This document shows positions 1,379-219,483 of a stretch of DNA of 248,000 bases, in pieces; the first letter of the stretch is position 1, and each line of letters starts with the position of its first letter. The translations under genes and the position numbers were made by a program. Source of the stretch: Octopus vulgaris (lineage: Eukaryota); NCBI GenBank assembly GCA_951406725.2, contig OX597825.1, positions 14,900,001 to 15,148,000 on the forward strand. Direction: 5' to 3'. The notes under the pieces were generated by a model. The model had not been told where the DNA came from. It did no database searches and saw only the letters and a list, made by a program, of their open reading frames with translations.

Positions 1379-1638
1379 ATATATATATATATATATATAT
1401 ATATATATATATATATATATATATATATATTGAAGTAGATAAATGAATAATCTTATTACGGATTATTCAAATGATAACCGACACCTGGGTAGCAAAAATC
1501 ACAACAGAAAAAGCACGGTTGAGGTTACGACCCTGGGGCCTAAAATCCGTGCCTTAGTGCGGAAATTTGAAGTTTTATATATTTAGTGTAGGAAGAAATG
1601 GAGCTGAACGAAGATTTAACAAAATTCCTTTTTATTAT

Positions 1639-1720
1639 TTTCTACATATGTTTCAAAGGCTGCAAAGTCCCTAATTCGGATTGAATAAGGAGTCCATTTT
1701 GCAGCCTTCTCTTCAGGAAA
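1639..1720 (-). ncRNA. Type I hammerhead ribozyme (family H1)
   Basis: Minus strand reads UUUC-CUGAAGA-[GAAGGCUGCAAA...UUUGCAGCCUUU, 12-bp helix II]-GAAA-CAUAU-GUA-GAAA. Helix I is UUUC/GAAA, helix III is the palindrome ACAUAUGU, and the cleavage triplet is GUA (1645-1643). Confidence 0.85.
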
Positions 1721-2919
1721 GTCCAGGAACTTAATTCTCCAACAAAATGCACAGCAAGCTTTTCGACAAACGCTCACGAGGAGCCCATGGAATAAATGGC
1801 ACAAACTGTCTATCAATATGCGTTGACGCCAGGCTGGGTGAAAGCCGACGAGAAAGTCCGTTGAGATAATTCAAGGTCAAAATCCGGTTAACAGAAGGGG
1901 AGTACAGGAAAATCAAAGGGTGTGAATGTATTCTGTATGACTGGTGTTAATATTTGAATTGCTTTAAGAATGAGTGCTAGAGTGTTTGAGTGTGAGAAAT
2001 TGCTTTCATGTATGTGTGTGTGCATCTATGTATGTGTGGCAGTGTGTTTAGAAGGCAGCAAGGGAGAGAGATATAGCTGGTATTAATGGTCAAGCAACAG
2101 AAAAGTCTGTGTCTGTGTGTTCGTCTGTAACCAGTTGATAGAGAGAGGGTGTGTCAACAATGGTCATGGCAGGATACAGTGCTGCTGACAGGGATGTCAG
2201 CAGTTCTAGACAACTAGCAGTTCTTACACTAACAGGGGAGTGATATCCCCTTACAAATTTAATTCAATTTTTCTTCCATTTTCTTAGGAAATCAAGGGGT
2301 TAACTATATTAGACTTCATTGGTATGAGAGAAAAGTATGCCGTTTCCAGTGTGGGCATCTGAAAGAATTTTGCACAATCGAGTTAACAAGGTGCTCTCGG
2401 GCGAACAGAATATGAAAGAGTTCCGAGTTGCAAAGCGCACAGGTTTTTTTGCCCTTATCAAACGGTAAAGACACCGATAAAATTGAACATTCCAGTCTAA
2501 AAGTTGAATTCGCGTTCTTCAAACGCCAGAGTAATTTACTTAGGTAGGTTAGATCTTATGTGCAGTTTCGCCAAGCAATTGCCAGAAATTTCCCCCAGGT
2601 TTCGTAGACTGCGAGAAAATCGCTATGAAAAGCCATAAAATCACTGTATGAATCATAGACTAGCACCAAACACACAGAAAATATATCGAAAGTCTTTTTT
2701 CGCTAGTTGGCTAATGGGTCATAGAACATATGCACCAATACGTGGGGGTGCTGAAACATTTTCAGCTTTAAGAGGATAGCTTCCGAGTTTGAAAGGCTTA
2801 GGACCATTGCACTAAATATGTGAATCTAAGAGGGCCGGATGTAGTATAAAATCTGATGCTCCTACCGAAAGTCAGGAAATGTTCAGCCCCATCCCCTACA
2901 TACATATATATATGAAAAC

Positions 2920-3205
2920 GCATGGCTCAGCGGTTGGAGCGCCGAGCTTACGATCGTGAGGTTGGGAGTTCGAATCCCGGACAGGGCTGCGTGTTGTGTT
3001 CTTGAGCAAGACACTTTATTTCACGTTGCTCCAGTTCACTCAGTTGTGACGTCACAGGTTCCAAGCTGTATCTGCTGTTGCCTTGCCCTTGGATAACACT
3101 GGTGGCGTGGACAGGGGAGGCCGGTACGAAAGGGTGACTGGTGGTCTTCCATAAACAACCTTGCTTGGACTTGTGCCTGGGAGGGTAACTTTCTAGGTTG
3201 GGTCT
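2920..3205 (+). mobile_element. tRNA-derived SINE, group C
   Basis: A box TGGCTCAGCGG, B box GTTCGAATCCC, core TGTGTTCTTGAGCAAGACACTTTATTTCAC; siblings at 127052, 172133, 179150, 217003. Confidence 0.85.
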
Positions 3206-215899: not shown

Positions 215900-216745
215900 C
215901 ATGTCCCTTGGATTTTGCAATGCAAGGAGACTATTAGGCAGGTTACTGATCAGATGACGAATATTTTCTTGCAGAATTTCTTGCCAAATTTCATGCAGTA
216001 ATCTCAAAATATCTGGCTTCGAAAATGCTTTCTTGTTCTTTTTGTTAATTATCCTGTCCATTATGTCCTAGAGGTGTTCAATGGGGTTCATATCTAGTGA
216101 CAGGCTTGGTCATGGTAGCCTTTTCATGCCATTCTCATCCACCAAATATTGGGTCTTCTTAGCCATGTGACAAGGAGCCCCACCTTCCTTTAATAAACGG
216201 TTTTCATTAATCCTTTCGTCATTGGAGAAGGTTGAAATTAGTCCTTTCTGCTATAAGGTTTACATATTTATCTGAGTTTCTGTTACCCTCACACTGCACC
216301 AGCTCTAGTCAACCATGGCTTCAAATTGCTTCCCAGACCATCACAGAATTGCTGCCGTGCTTCAGTGTTGGCTGCAACCTTTTCAAATCAAATTCTTAAG
216401 CACGGAGTCTCCAGACACACATTCGATCACTGTCTGGAAATACAGCAAATCTGGACTCTCCAGAGACTATGCCAATGTCCCAAAATGTTACTGGCCTCTC
216501 CACTATGTCACTGGCCCAATCTTTTCTCTACTTGATATTGGCTAGTCGAAGAATTGGCTTCTTTCTTGCTGCTCTGCCATAGTAACCAATTTTGTGCAGA
216601 TAACTAACGGCTTTTCTGGGACTGACATCAACTTGTTCTGCTATGTCAGATGCCTTTCATCGAGACCTACAATAGGGCCGCTTTCAGATCCGGACAGTTC
216701 GATGGATCCTTTTGTTTATGTCATGATTAAACAGTTGACTAAATG
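215900..216745 (-). pseudogene. Decayed Tc1-family transposase
   Basis: Minus strand SLDMNPIEHL (compare SPDMNPIEHLW), with a catalytic-domain remnant antisense to ORF 216315-216545. Confidence 0.6.
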
Positions 216746-217002
216746 CGGTGCTCCAGCGTGGCCAGAGTCAAATGGCTAAAACTAATACAAGAATAAAAGA
216801 ATATAGAACCTGAAACATCAAAATGTCAATTAATAAATAATATAAACCATTACAAGTTAGAATAAATATAAAACAATGTTTTATAGAGCGTCTATTTCCT
216901 TCTGCCATGTCTGTGTATGTATATGTGTGTATATATATATATATATACAAGTCTGTGTCTGTGTGTGCCTGTGTAGATATGTATGTATTGATATATGTAC
217001 GT

Positions 217003-217312
217003 GGGGGCGCAATGGCCTGCGGTTAGGTTGTGAGTTCGAATCCCGGACCTAGCTGCGTATTGTGTTCTTGAGCAAGACGCTATTTCACATTGCTCCGGTT
217101 CACTCAGCTGTAGAAATGATTTGTGACGTCAGAGGTACCAAGTTGTATCGGCCTTTGCCTTTCCTTTGGATACCACTGGTGGCATGGAGAGGGCAGGCTG
217201 GTATACATGGGCGACTGCTTGTCTTCCATAAACAACCTTGCCCGGACTTGTACCTGGGAGGGTAACGTTCTATGTGCAATTCCACGGCCAGTCATGACCG
217301 AAGGGGGTCTCA
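217003..217312 (+). mobile_element. SINE group C
   Basis: Near full-length match. Confidence 0.8.
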
Positions 217313-219483
217313 GCATATATATATATATATTACTATATATATATATATATATATATATATAAGGGACAATAATCCCGAAACTAGTCCGAGCGTATCACTC
217401 AGGCTTGCGAGAAAGGGATAGCCTCCCTTTGCAAATACTTCAAGAGCACTGAAATGGTGTCTAAAGCCAGCTGGAGACGACGATCTCCTGGGGCTATAGA
217501 GCTAGAGTAACACCCCCTCCCCTATGTGGTTAGCCATATTAAGATGGCTTCTATACTTTACATTATCGAGCGATTACTGTTTACATTTCATTCAGAGATT
217601 TAATAATGCCTATATATATATATATATATATATATATATATATATATATATATATATATATATATAGATATAGATAGATAGATATATAGATATAGATATA
217701 TAGATATATAGATATATATATATATAGAAGGTTGACGGACTCGTACCAGCAGCAGGCAGCAATATGCTTATACGATCATACAGGAGGACAGGGGATAAGT
217801 ATCGATTGGTATTTCGAAAAGCAGAAAAGAACATTAGATTTACGTATCGTACTCAAAGTAAATGGCTTGTTAAAAGGCAACACTGCTAAAAGTTCCTTGT
217901 TGGCATATTACGAGGGAATCAGCAATCAATAAGTTAGCTCGTTCTCAATGCAATTATCAACATATAAATATTGTTACAAATTGAGGATTAACATTATTTG
218001 CCACCAAGTTTTTTAATGGTGTCGTATAATAATATCTATAGTATATTTTGTCGGTTAATTTTGAGAGTGATGCTTATATTTGATGGAATAAATATCTTTA
218101 GTCTTAAGCATAAAGACGTGCTGCTGTCAACTTTTCGACTATAGGATCTTATGTTAAAGGTTTCAGAAACGTTCTTGTATACTTTTCCTGAGATGCTGTT
218201 ATCATTCCATCCACTTCAAACACACATACATACAAAAATACATTCACATAGATATATATATGTATATATAATATATTATATATATACATATATATTTATA
218301 TATATATATATATATATATATATATATGTACTCGCACATGCACATGGTAGTTCACTTCTATGGCAATCTATGGAAGTGGAATCGTTTAAGGGATGCTGGA
218401 AAAGCGTCCAGGAGTAACTGTCTACAATATTTCAGAGAAGTTGAAAAGTTGAAAACACACCATTTCAATGCATTTGCTGGATTCCATTAGTGTCCAAAGT
218501 TAAGCTTTTGAAAGGAGGCAGTTATTGACAGTTATAGTATATCTTAATATGTCACATGAAAATATTTAGACATAAATATAAATCCGCACACTTTTATTAG
218601 GAGTAATGTTAATAGCAGGAAAATATTTGTGAGTGAATGCGTGTCATAGTCTTTGACTGTGTTTGCGTATATGTAGGCGTGTTTAAGTGCGTACATTTTT
218701 AAATGTGTATCTGTAAATATTTCTGTTTGTGTGTTTCTGTACATATTTGCTTGTGTGATACTGTGTATGTGTGCCTGTACGTAAATTTCTATCACACAGA
218801 CATATACTTACACACACATACAAACAAACACATACATATATATTCTTAAGTATATACTATATTTTTTTTATCTCAATTTATATCCAGTTTCGATTGAAGA
218901 TACGGATTTAAACTGAGAGCTTTCGTTGTATTTTAGCTTTAATATTTTAGGCTTCTTAAGATATCTGTGTGTAAAAAATGCCACTTCACTTTGTCCATAT
219001 TTTATCTATGATTGTTACAAAATCCTCTTAGCCATTACACTTCGGTGTCTAAAGTAAATACTTAAATCTTTCTCTAGCAATTTATCTCTTACATAACAGA
219101 TTGCATATAGATTCTATATCTCATTATTAGATTCTATATCTTATAAATAATTTGGTTGTTATCTTTAATAATTTTATCCTTCCATTACAACTGATCTCCT
219201 ATACCCTAAACCATATGGCCAATGGTGCCTCTCGACCGCACTGATTTAAACTGAATGTGATAGATACCTAGAAAGAGAAAAGAGATAAGAGAGGGACATA
219301 TATTGTGACATATAGTGTGAGAGTGAGAGAAACAGAGATGGTCGTAATACAAGTATATACAAAGTGTGATTACATTCAGCAATAATACAAAAGCAATCGT
219401 TGGAGATATGATTCATTGCATGGCTTGATAAGGTTAACCTTTTTAAATCAATTGACGCAAAAGGAAACAAACGTTATATTGTA

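Follow-up and report, generated by a model that had tools for sequence, protein, structure and literature searches.

Hammerhead-bearing elements at (TA)n microsatellites in a 248-kb window of the Octopus vulgaris genome and their probable relation to Penelope-like elements

Do the hammerhead-like motifs along a stretch of the Octopus vulgaris genome belong to mobile elements, and what kind of element would place them beside (TA)n microsatellites? The stretch analyzed here, referred to as the window, comprises 248 kb of contig OX597825.1 (assembly GCA_951406725.2, positions 14,900,001 to 15,148,000). An initial annotation had listed motifs resembling type I hammerhead ribozymes (HHRs) at a number of positions, and we found that each of these positions is located at, or within a few bases of, the boundary or the cleavage site of an HHR-like motif. 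The elements in the window are probably insertions of the Penelope-like element (PLE) type, in part short derivatives that do not code for protein, namely solo or tandem units of about 160-550 nucleotides (nt) that resemble retrozymes, and in part 5'-truncated 3' ends, and each of them likely bears, or formerly bore, a minimal type I hammerhead within the region of its terminal repeat. This judgment covers the whole PLE-type explanation jointly.

Hammerhead motifs and the loci with intact cores

Two descriptors of the type I hammerhead were used to scan the window. The strict descriptor demanded a helix I of at least 5 base pairs (bp) and disallowed the extra nucleotide, while the relaxed descriptor followed the rules for the minimal HHRs of PLEs (PMC4209133) and ignored (TA)n; a perfect core was defined as CUGANGA...GAAA with H17 not G. 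The families are labeled H1 to H6, p1 and p2, and two further sites are named by their positions, 180807 and 8812. The strict descriptor revealed three sites (both H3 arms and 180807), compared with 0.1 in shuffles, and missed H1 and H2. The relaxed descriptor revealed five perfect-core sites; the corresponding figures were 0.12 for 40 dinucleotide shuffles, 0.15 for block shuffles and 0 for the reversed sequence. When one bulge in helix II was also permitted, seven sites were found at five loci (H1, H2 twice, H3 twice, 180807 and 8812), compared with approximately 0.17 in shuffles. As evident from these counts, perfect-core HHR motifs were 30-40 times commoner than in shuffles, and intact-core hammerhead motifs are truly over-represented in the window. 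The loci concerned are as follows.

1431 to 1800, minus strand: H1 element, a single copy whose 5' limit is not defined and whose 3' end joins (TA)25 at 1381-1430
1640-1720, minus strand: H1 HHR, with a helix I of UUUC/GAAA (4 bp), CUGAAGA, a helix II of 12 bp closed by G.U, and GAAA
193604 to 194830, minus strand: H2 tandem array, a 547-bp unit in 2.2 copies with 97% identity, whose 3' end joins (TA)n at 193560-193624
193883-193965 and 194429-194511, minus strand: H2 HHRs, one per full unit
194837 to 195153, plus strand: inverted truncated H2 copy, head-to-head with the tandem array, its 3' end running into (CA)n and then (AT)76 at 195173-195325
132039 to 132175, plus strand: H2 3'-terminal fragment of approximately 130 nt, with 85% identity to 193600-193731, adjoining (TA)n and ending before the HHR
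208584 to 208905, no single strand: H3 palindrome of 322 bp (98.5%), two copies head-to-head with their joint at 208742
208619-208708 (minus strand) and 208780-208870 (plus strand): H3 HHRs, canonical in each arm
180646 to 181030, plus strand: 180807 element, between two (TA)n tracts, absent from the initial annotation
180800-180897, plus strand: 180807 HHR, with CUGACGA between a 7-bp helix I and a long helix II, then GAAA, a helix III of 12 nt that is not palindromic, and A at H17
181063 to 181299, minus strand: H6b element of approximately 240 nt, whose 3' end abuts (TA)n at about 181030-181062
8812, plus strand: a site with a perfect core but an AU-rich, poor HHR fold, far from any (TA)n and absent from the initial annotation

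The H1 helix III is the perfect palindrome ACAUAUGU, H17 is A and cleavage is predicted before 1643, so that H1 reads as a clean PLE-type minimal HHR. In each H2 HHR, a helix I of 7 bp is combined with CUGAUGA and one extra A; next come a G10.1-C11.1 pair, a bulged C and a helix II that is long but interrupted, and then GAAA, the helix III ACCGAGGU and A at H17. From left to right, the H2 locus consists of (TA)n, the 2.2 tandem minus-strand units, the inverted plus-strand copy and (CA)n(AT)76, with both 3' ends facing outward. Upon alignment of the inverted copy with 193722-194095, a clean 54-nt deletion was found to take helix II and most of CUGAUGA, indicating that the ribozyme was specifically lost there. 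The H2 fragment at 132 kb is, by its sequence, consistent with a 5'-truncated copy. In H3, the HHR has a helix I of UUUUAG/CUAAAA, CUGAUGA, a long helix II closed by 7 bp, GAAA, the helix III ACGAUUGU and A at H17. The right H3 arm abuts (TA)n at 208903 and the left arm is 113 nt from (TA)n at 208436-208470; the near-identity of the two arms suggests that they were formed in one event. The HHR-like motif of H6b (about 181099-181165, minus strand) has the complete core CUGAAGA...GAAAC, a helix I of 5 bp (GAUAA/UUAUC) and a helix III of 2 bp, together with a poor helix II that contains one bulge and one mismatch. The 8812 site is probably an expected chance match.

The type I three-helix topology was satisfied by explicit pairing in H1, H2, H3 and 180807, and the HHR-constrained folds of these four were within 1-6 kcal/mol of the minimum free energy (MFE). 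A test of the core positions (C3 U4 G5 A6 N7 G8 A9...G12 A13 A14, A15.1-U16.1, H17 not G) was passed by H1, both H2 copies, both H3 arms, 180807 and H6b. The same test was failed by H4, H5, H6a, p1, p2 and a motif at 85157 that is described below. Four or five loci therefore have intact cores, and the remaining families are decayed, variant or truncated. The initial annotation had claimed at least six families with type I folds, and this claim, which was overstated, held for about half of them: H1, H2, H3 and H6b have intact cores, whereas H4, H5 and H6a are substituted and p1 and p2 are truncated. Its statement that the families are unrelated to one another in sequence was confirmed by sequence comparison.

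Two further repeats lie close to these loci. A 75-nt hairpin with a perfect stem (CAATCAATATAAGGGTAAC...GTTACCCTTATATTGATTG) occupies 180570-180645, between a (TA)n tract and the 180807 element. Directly 5' of H6b, at 181304-182225, a unit of approximately 184 bp is repeated in five tandem copies with 83-89% identity, and the same unit is dispersed as monomers or dimers at 79409-79720, 102679-102973, 109191-109599, 244057-244368 and more than 15 further sites.

Insertion anatomy at (TA)n tracts

The window contains 224 merged tracts of (TA)n with n of at least 6, or about one per 1.1 kb, which make up 3.5% of its bases. The chance of finding such a tract on a given side of a random position is 0.168 within 270 nt and 0.18 within 300 nt. 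Compared with this background, four of the five perfect-core loci, which had been picked by the descriptor without regard to (TA)n, are followed 3' of the cut by (TA)n at 270 nt or less, namely at 213 nt in H1, 136 nt in 180807, 265 nt in H2, and 38 or 156 nt in H3 (binomial P about 0.003). When all insertion events were counted, a tract was present within 300 nt 3' of the cut in 14 of 16, in agreement with the 3'-side adjacency proposed in the initial annotation. The families and copies other than those listed above are as follows.

134871 to 135111, minus strand: H6a, the second H6 copy (77% identity), with its 3' end directly against a (TA)n tract that ends at about 134870
180196 to 180412, plus strand: H4 reference copy of approximately 215 nt, with (TA)n on both sides
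184555-184777 (plus strand), 92097-92318 (minus strand) and 160639-160914 (minus strand): other H4 copies
78282-78453 and 16720-16877, both minus strand: 5'-truncated H4 copies
210096 to 210257, plus strand: H5c, 162 nt, with (TA)n on both sides
101336-101413 (plus strand), 101424-101507 (minus strand) and 101635-101720 (plus strand): related H5 pieces, the last two forming an inverted pair
212935 to 213117, minus strand: p1, 5'-truncated within the HHR core at a (TA)n junction, its 3' end (...GGTTTTGTCTCTAATT) abutting (TA)n at 212934
87528 to 87690, no single strand: p1-family dimer of head-to-head 3'-terminal regions (approximately 70-95 nt), with both 3' ends abutting (TA)n and the HHR not retained
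217361 to 217605, plus strand: p2, 5'-truncated at (TA)n within the motif, with (TA)n again 226 nt downstream

These families differ from the intact loci in their cores. The decayed H6a motif reads CUGAAAA, which is a G8A substitution, and also has U16.1C. The H4 reference motif consists of CUGUGGA, the extra nucleotide, a helix II of GAGC/GCUC with a GUAG loop, GAAA and the palindromic ACGU followed by U; the core CUGUNGA (A6U) is found in six of six copies, and conservation along the element is highest in the motif block (0.88 compared with 0.7-0.8). H5c combines CCGAUGA with a weak helix II, GAAA and the near-palindromic ACUCAGAGU, and all three H5 copies read CCGAYGA (U4C) with a helix II of 2-3 bp. 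The p1 motif reads (UA)n-GAUGA...CAU-GAAAC-GAUCGU-A with the palindromic helix III ACGAUCGU, and p2 keeps only a helix II (GGGA/UCCC), GAAAC, the palindromic ACUAGU and C, a half-motif that is not significant alone.

The same insertion anatomy was directly visible in intact and variant families. In all families, the predicted cleavage site is located 24-265 nt from the element 3' end. Short copies of H4, H5c, H3, 180807, p1 and p2 are flanked by (TA)n on both sides, whereas H1, H2 and H6 have (TA)n on the 3' side only. The 3' ends are constant at (TA)n and the 5' ends are variable, as seen in H4 (at 78 and 16 kb), in the H2 fragment at 132 kb, in the p1 family, and in p1 and p2, which are both cut within the motif; the p1 dimer at 87.5 kb and the H2 fragment obey the same 3'-end rule. 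The truncated 5' ends of H4 at 78 kb, p1 and p2 abut (TA)n directly, and this meeting of a truncated 5' end with (TA)n argues for insertion into a pre-existing tract. Additionally, H2, H3, H5 and the p1 dimer have tandem and/or inverted head-to-head layouts with outward 3' ends. The fixed polarity that had been proposed relative to (TA)n was upheld by the constant 3' ends but not by the short copies with (TA)n on both sides, and is better put as 3' ends that stay fixed in (TA)n while the extent of 5' truncation varies. The copies at 101454 and 208619, which had been regarded as inward-facing exceptions, actually belong to head-to-head dimers, of which they form the inner arms, and the 3' ends of these dimers face outward.

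Other repeats in the window also adjoin (TA)n. With a GC content of 30-38%, numerous dispersed repeats and no long open reading frames (ORFs) found in its 248 kb, the window has the overall character of an animal genome rich in simple sequence repeats (SSRs). Its commonest repeat resembles a short interspersed nuclear element (SINE) of approximately 430 nt, with a tRNA-like-looking end, an internal (CA)n(TA)n and no hammerhead; its second end abuts (TA)n in five copies, and the repeat is the top single source of (TA)n flanks in the window. This repeat presumably resembles an octopus SINE. A search of the whole window with ARAGORN found no tRNA genes or tRNA-like sequences. The positions of the SINE-like repeat and of the transposase remnants are as follows.

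13745-14175 and about 37.0-37.4, 62.1-62.4, 70.2-70.5, 84.0-84.28, 87.1-87.4, 103.9-104.1, 191.7-192.0 and 207.8-208.0 kb: SINE-like repeat
111008-111310 (plus strand), 124810-125148 (minus strand) and 146628-146963 (minus strand): mariner/Tc1-type transposase remnants, matching Pfam Transposase_1 and DDE_3, the third recognized by eye only

The mariner/Tc1-type elements are DNA transposons that target TA, and their remnants could likewise add TA-flanked repeats to the window. At 100964-101082, two inverted copies of a repeat end (...GGACAGTGGTGGTCTTCTTCGCTCACCATTGACAGCTACCATA) are arranged tail-to-tail with one (TA)n tract between them and form a long hairpin, which gave miRNA-like Rfam matches of up to 62 bits, below threshold; this is another (TA)n-abutting family, in which a hammerhead was not seen. 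The 10-kb bin at 170001-180000 has the highest GC content (0.378), a GC skew of -0.14 and an AT skew of -0.105, and contains several ORF pieces of 100-210 amino acids (aa) without Pfam matches (including 176846-177238 and 177905-178540, both minus strand). This bin may represent a gene or a large decayed element.

Relation to Penelope-like elements and alternative explanations

A coding trace of a PLE was found at a single place in the window, where it is followed by an HHR-like motif and a microsatellite that could be read directly.

84364 to 84696, plus strand: PLE endonuclease remnant ORF, a GIY-YIG fragment with a CCHH pattern
85157 to 85197, plus strand: HHR-like motif, 460 nt downstream of the endonuclease remnant in the same orientation, read from the sequence

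Word-based searching with the GIY-YIG fragment returned no homologs, while an exhaustive HMMER search revealed 791 relatives. In relatives of 720-775 aa, it is the C-terminal domain that aligns to the fragment, and RVT_1 is present as well in most of those that were scanned; this combination of RVT_1 with a C-terminal GIY-YIG domain is the canonical PLE architecture. The motif at 85157 reads CCUUAG, CUGAAAA (G8A), a poor helix II, GAAAC, CGGU, A and CUAAAAGG, with a helix I that resembles that of H3, and (TG)n(TA)n follows approximately 50 nt past it at 85249-85345. The region 84364-85345 is a decayed PLE 3' end and has the layout expected of one. A search of the window for a second copy of this remnant was negative, and the endonuclease fragment is the only PLE coding remnant there, with no intact PLE. 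Among 78 ORF pieces upstream of the motifs, Pfam detected a reverse transcriptase (RT) or endonuclease (EN) only in the known GIY-YIG fragment, and no coding remnants were found upstream of H1, H2, H5, H6 or p1, which are thus either non-coding units or ends with deep truncation. The H elements can therefore only be non-autonomous or truncated. The initial view of a diverse set of non-coding, ribozyme-bearing retroelements tied to (TA)n agrees with the constant 3' ends, the 5' truncation, the dimers and the lack of upstream ORFs.

Published PLEs offer a close comparison. Craig et al. (2021; PMC8557442) found that PLEs of the Hydra clade, which occurs in Mollusca too, have readily detected canonical HHRs, that nearly all Hydra-clade families insert into (TA)n, and that Naiad and Neptune elements prefer (TA)n as well, with (TA)n targeting linked to the Neptune-type EN linker; they also described PLE insertions that form tandem and inverted, 5'-truncated head-to-head structures. 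Like the Hydra, Neptune and Naiad PLEs of that study, the window elements have an HHR near the 3' end in a terminal repeat, insertion into (TA)n, heavy 5' truncation and tandem or inverted head-to-head copies. Unlike PLEs, they encode neither RT nor EN, and they could not be tied by sequence to the terminal repeat of an autonomous PLE within the window, which contains no intact one. Whereas Hydra ENs are without CCHH, the endonuclease remnant keeps it, and the remnant is thus not of the Hydra clade.

The ribozymes themselves can be compared with the minimal type I HHRs that Cervera and de la Pena (2014; PMC4209133) found in metazoan PLE terminal repeats; in these HHRs, helix I is 4-5 bp, helix II is long, A9 and 10.1 are separated by an extra nucleotide, G10.1 pairs with C11.1 and the 15.2-16.2 region is palindromic. 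Several of these traits were present although the descriptor did not require them: the extra nucleotide after A9 in H2 and H4; G10.1-C11.1 in H2, H4 and, as a G.U-free stem, H3; a long helix II in H1, H2 and H3; a helix I of 4-7 bp; and a palindromic helix III in H1, H4, p1 and p2. PLE minimal HHRs and the window motifs thus have in common the type I topology, helix I length, long helix II, extra nucleotide and G10.1-C11.1 pair, as well as a very short palindromic helix III, which implies activity as dimers, and a high diversity between families within one genome. In contrast, several window families deviate in the core (A6U, U4C, G8A), helix II reaches an unusual length of 45-60 nt in H1, H2, H3 and 180807, and H2 and H6 have a bulged C beside 11.1.

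A second comparison is with the animal non-LTR retrozymes (Cervera and de la Pena 2020, PMC7229834; Li et al. 2026, bioRxiv 10.64898/2026.07.22.740005), which are likewise non-coding AT-rich units with one type I HHR each. Tandem repeats without an ORF, as in retrozymes, are present only in H2 (547 bp in 2.2 copies, 97%), and a PLE origin has been proposed that would be common to both; most window families differ from retrozyme arrays in being single dispersed monomers or inverted dimers. Li et al. argued that animal retrozymes are non-autonomous PLE derivatives, with their units derived from PLE terminal repeats, and reported that in most PLE insertions 5' truncation leaves just one terminal repeat. 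Additionally, PLE insertion in vitro does not require HHR cleavage (PMC11167929), and, with cleavage being dispensable for insertion, decayed ribozymes in old copies are unsurprising.

Several results weigh against a PLE-type origin of the whole set. An Rfam search of the whole window at the gathering score found no hammerhead. In permissive searches of small regions (E<=10), H1, H2, 180807 and H6b had no match, and only H3 matched Hammerhead_1 (RF00163), full-length, at 18.4 bits compared with the gathering score of 34; the permissive scans of the whole window were dominated by miRNA-like matches on (TA)n tracts, (CA)n tracts and palindromes. Positions of the core such as A6, U4, G8 and U16.1 are regarded as essential from established mutagenesis, and half of the families, which have substitutions at such positions, would on this ground be inactive or not ribozymes at all. 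Among the six H4 copies, which are too few for a strong test of covariation, one double change was observed, no better than in shuffles; the other families have at most three copies each, or identical ones. In a distant full-length PLE relative (metagenome contig L001), which is too distant to inform on the window, no HHR was found by the descriptor, and only (TA)5 is present approximately 275 nt downstream of the ORF. Finally, (TA)n adjacency is not unique to HHR elements, as the HHR-free SINE contains and ends in (TA)n. With one tract per 1.1 kb and HHR-free repeats adjoining such tracts, adjacency alone cannot name the mobilizing enzyme, and the priming at (TA)n that the initial annotation proposed is to be read as a suggestion about mechanism.

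The strongest competitor to a PLE-type origin of all families, tentative but to be taken seriously, is that only H1, H2, H3 and perhaps 180807 and H6b are real, and that the motifs of H4, H5, p2 and 8812 are chance resemblances, in which GAAAC and a short palindrome happen to adjoin a hairpin, in AT-rich repeats beside the very abundant (TA)n tracts. One-mismatch matches were not enriched on their own (5, compared with 1.5-1.9 in shuffles and 3 in the reversed sequence). A survey of half-motifs (helix II, GAAAC and palindrome) gave 8 compared with 6 in the reversed control, so that fragments of the p2 type carry no weight alone. The HHR-constrained folds of H4, H5 and 8812 are also much weaker than the MFE, and the missing covariation in H4 and the Rfam searches, which found nothing, point the same way. 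Chance would not lead one to expect, however, that the motif block is the best-conserved part of H4, that H4 has the PLE-specific extra nucleotide, G10.1-C11.1 pair and palindromic ACGU, or that H4 and H5 have the same insertion anatomy as the perfect-core families. Less likely is an ordinary origin as SINEs moved by a long interspersed nuclear element (LINE) with a preference for (TA)n, in which the ribozyme-like block would be an unrelated structured or promoter region. The defined length of H4 (approximately 215 nt), its multiple dispersed copies and the (TA)n association of the main SINE would fit such an origin, and the H4 block GGCTCGAAAC is, by eye, loosely like a B box of RNA polymerase III promoters. 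We nevertheless consider it very improbable: ARAGORN found no tRNA-like sequence in the window and an A box is not evident, dimers in tandem or head-to-head order are a typical feature of PLEs and not of LINE or SINE insertions, and five loci have perfect hammerhead cores.

Two further explanations concern the (TA)n tracts and the inverted loci. It is unlikely, although somewhat less so than an ordinary SINE origin, that the (TA)n tracts, instead of being targets, are 3' tails which the elements themselves produced or seeded and which slippage then lengthened. The constant partner of (TA)n is indeed the 3' end, H1, H2 and H6 have (TA)n 3' only, and the HHR-free SINE likewise ends in (TA)n. Tails do not account for the (TA)n found directly at the 5' junction in H4 at 78 kb, p1, p2, H5c and 180807, where the chance background within 150 nt is approximately 0.10, and published PLE families insert into (TA)n (PMC8557442). 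The least probable of the explanations is that the palindromic or inverted loci (H3, H5 and the p1 dimer) are DNA transposons of the foldback type, or miniature inverted-repeat transposable elements, at TA, with an incidental likeness to hammerheads. H3 is a near-perfect palindrome of 322 bp in which the permissive whole-window Rfam scan sees only generic miRNA-like hairpins, and remnants of mariner-type transposases, which target TA, occur in the window; a TA duplication cannot be read inside (TA)n. Both H3 arms, however, contain a complete canonical HHR, of which approximately 0.1 would be expected per window. The arms are whole-length copies with no internal region and no short terminal inverted repeats, and H3 is present once. 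The p1 family, moreover, also occurs as a single, 5'-truncated copy with a fixed 3' end, which is a signature of retroelements.

Proposed mechanism and implications

A PLE-type origin would account for the window as follows, where mobilization by a PLE enzyme, the role of (TA)n as a target rather than a tail and any self-cleavage are what we infer. A PLE protein with RT and GIY-YIG domains, encoded elsewhere in the genome, would nick (TA)n tracts, and target-primed reverse transcription would copy the element RNA starting in its 3' region. Where copying stopped short, 5' truncation would result, and template switching could give rise to tandem and head-to-head copies whose 3' ends face outward into the microsatellite. 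In tandem transcripts, hammerheads acting as dimers via the palindromic helix III might cut out unit-length RNA, with H2 being the best candidate. Most copies in the window are old, with decayed ribozyme cores.

The combination of an HHR with (TA)n has already been published for autonomous PLEs (PMC4209133, PMC8557442), and the set is therefore not a new class, contrary to its initial presentation as a class missed by repeat annotation. A possible increment is that several unrelated short non-coding families here show microsatellite association, as microsatellite targets are not mentioned in the retrozyme literature that was searched. Whether many unrelated non-coding hammerhead elements, both the monomers of 160-240 nt and the 547-bp tandem retrozyme, inherited (TA)n-specific integration from PLE helpers is a question on which we are evenly divided. 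If they did, microsatellite targeting would be a property of animal retrozymes and of solo PLE-derived units, and this could help to explain the under-annotation of such elements and the fragmented (TA)n tracts here. As most copies are truncated, dimerized or decayed, repeat annotation would probably call much of this material simple repeat or unknown.

H1, H2 and H3 are concrete ribozyme candidates, and H2 provides a natural tandem pair with a bulged helix II. The window may thus offer a small-scale example of PLE-type elements populating an SSR-rich, invertebrate-like genome, in which unrelated short families would share nothing but a minimal hammerhead and a landing site in (TA)n.

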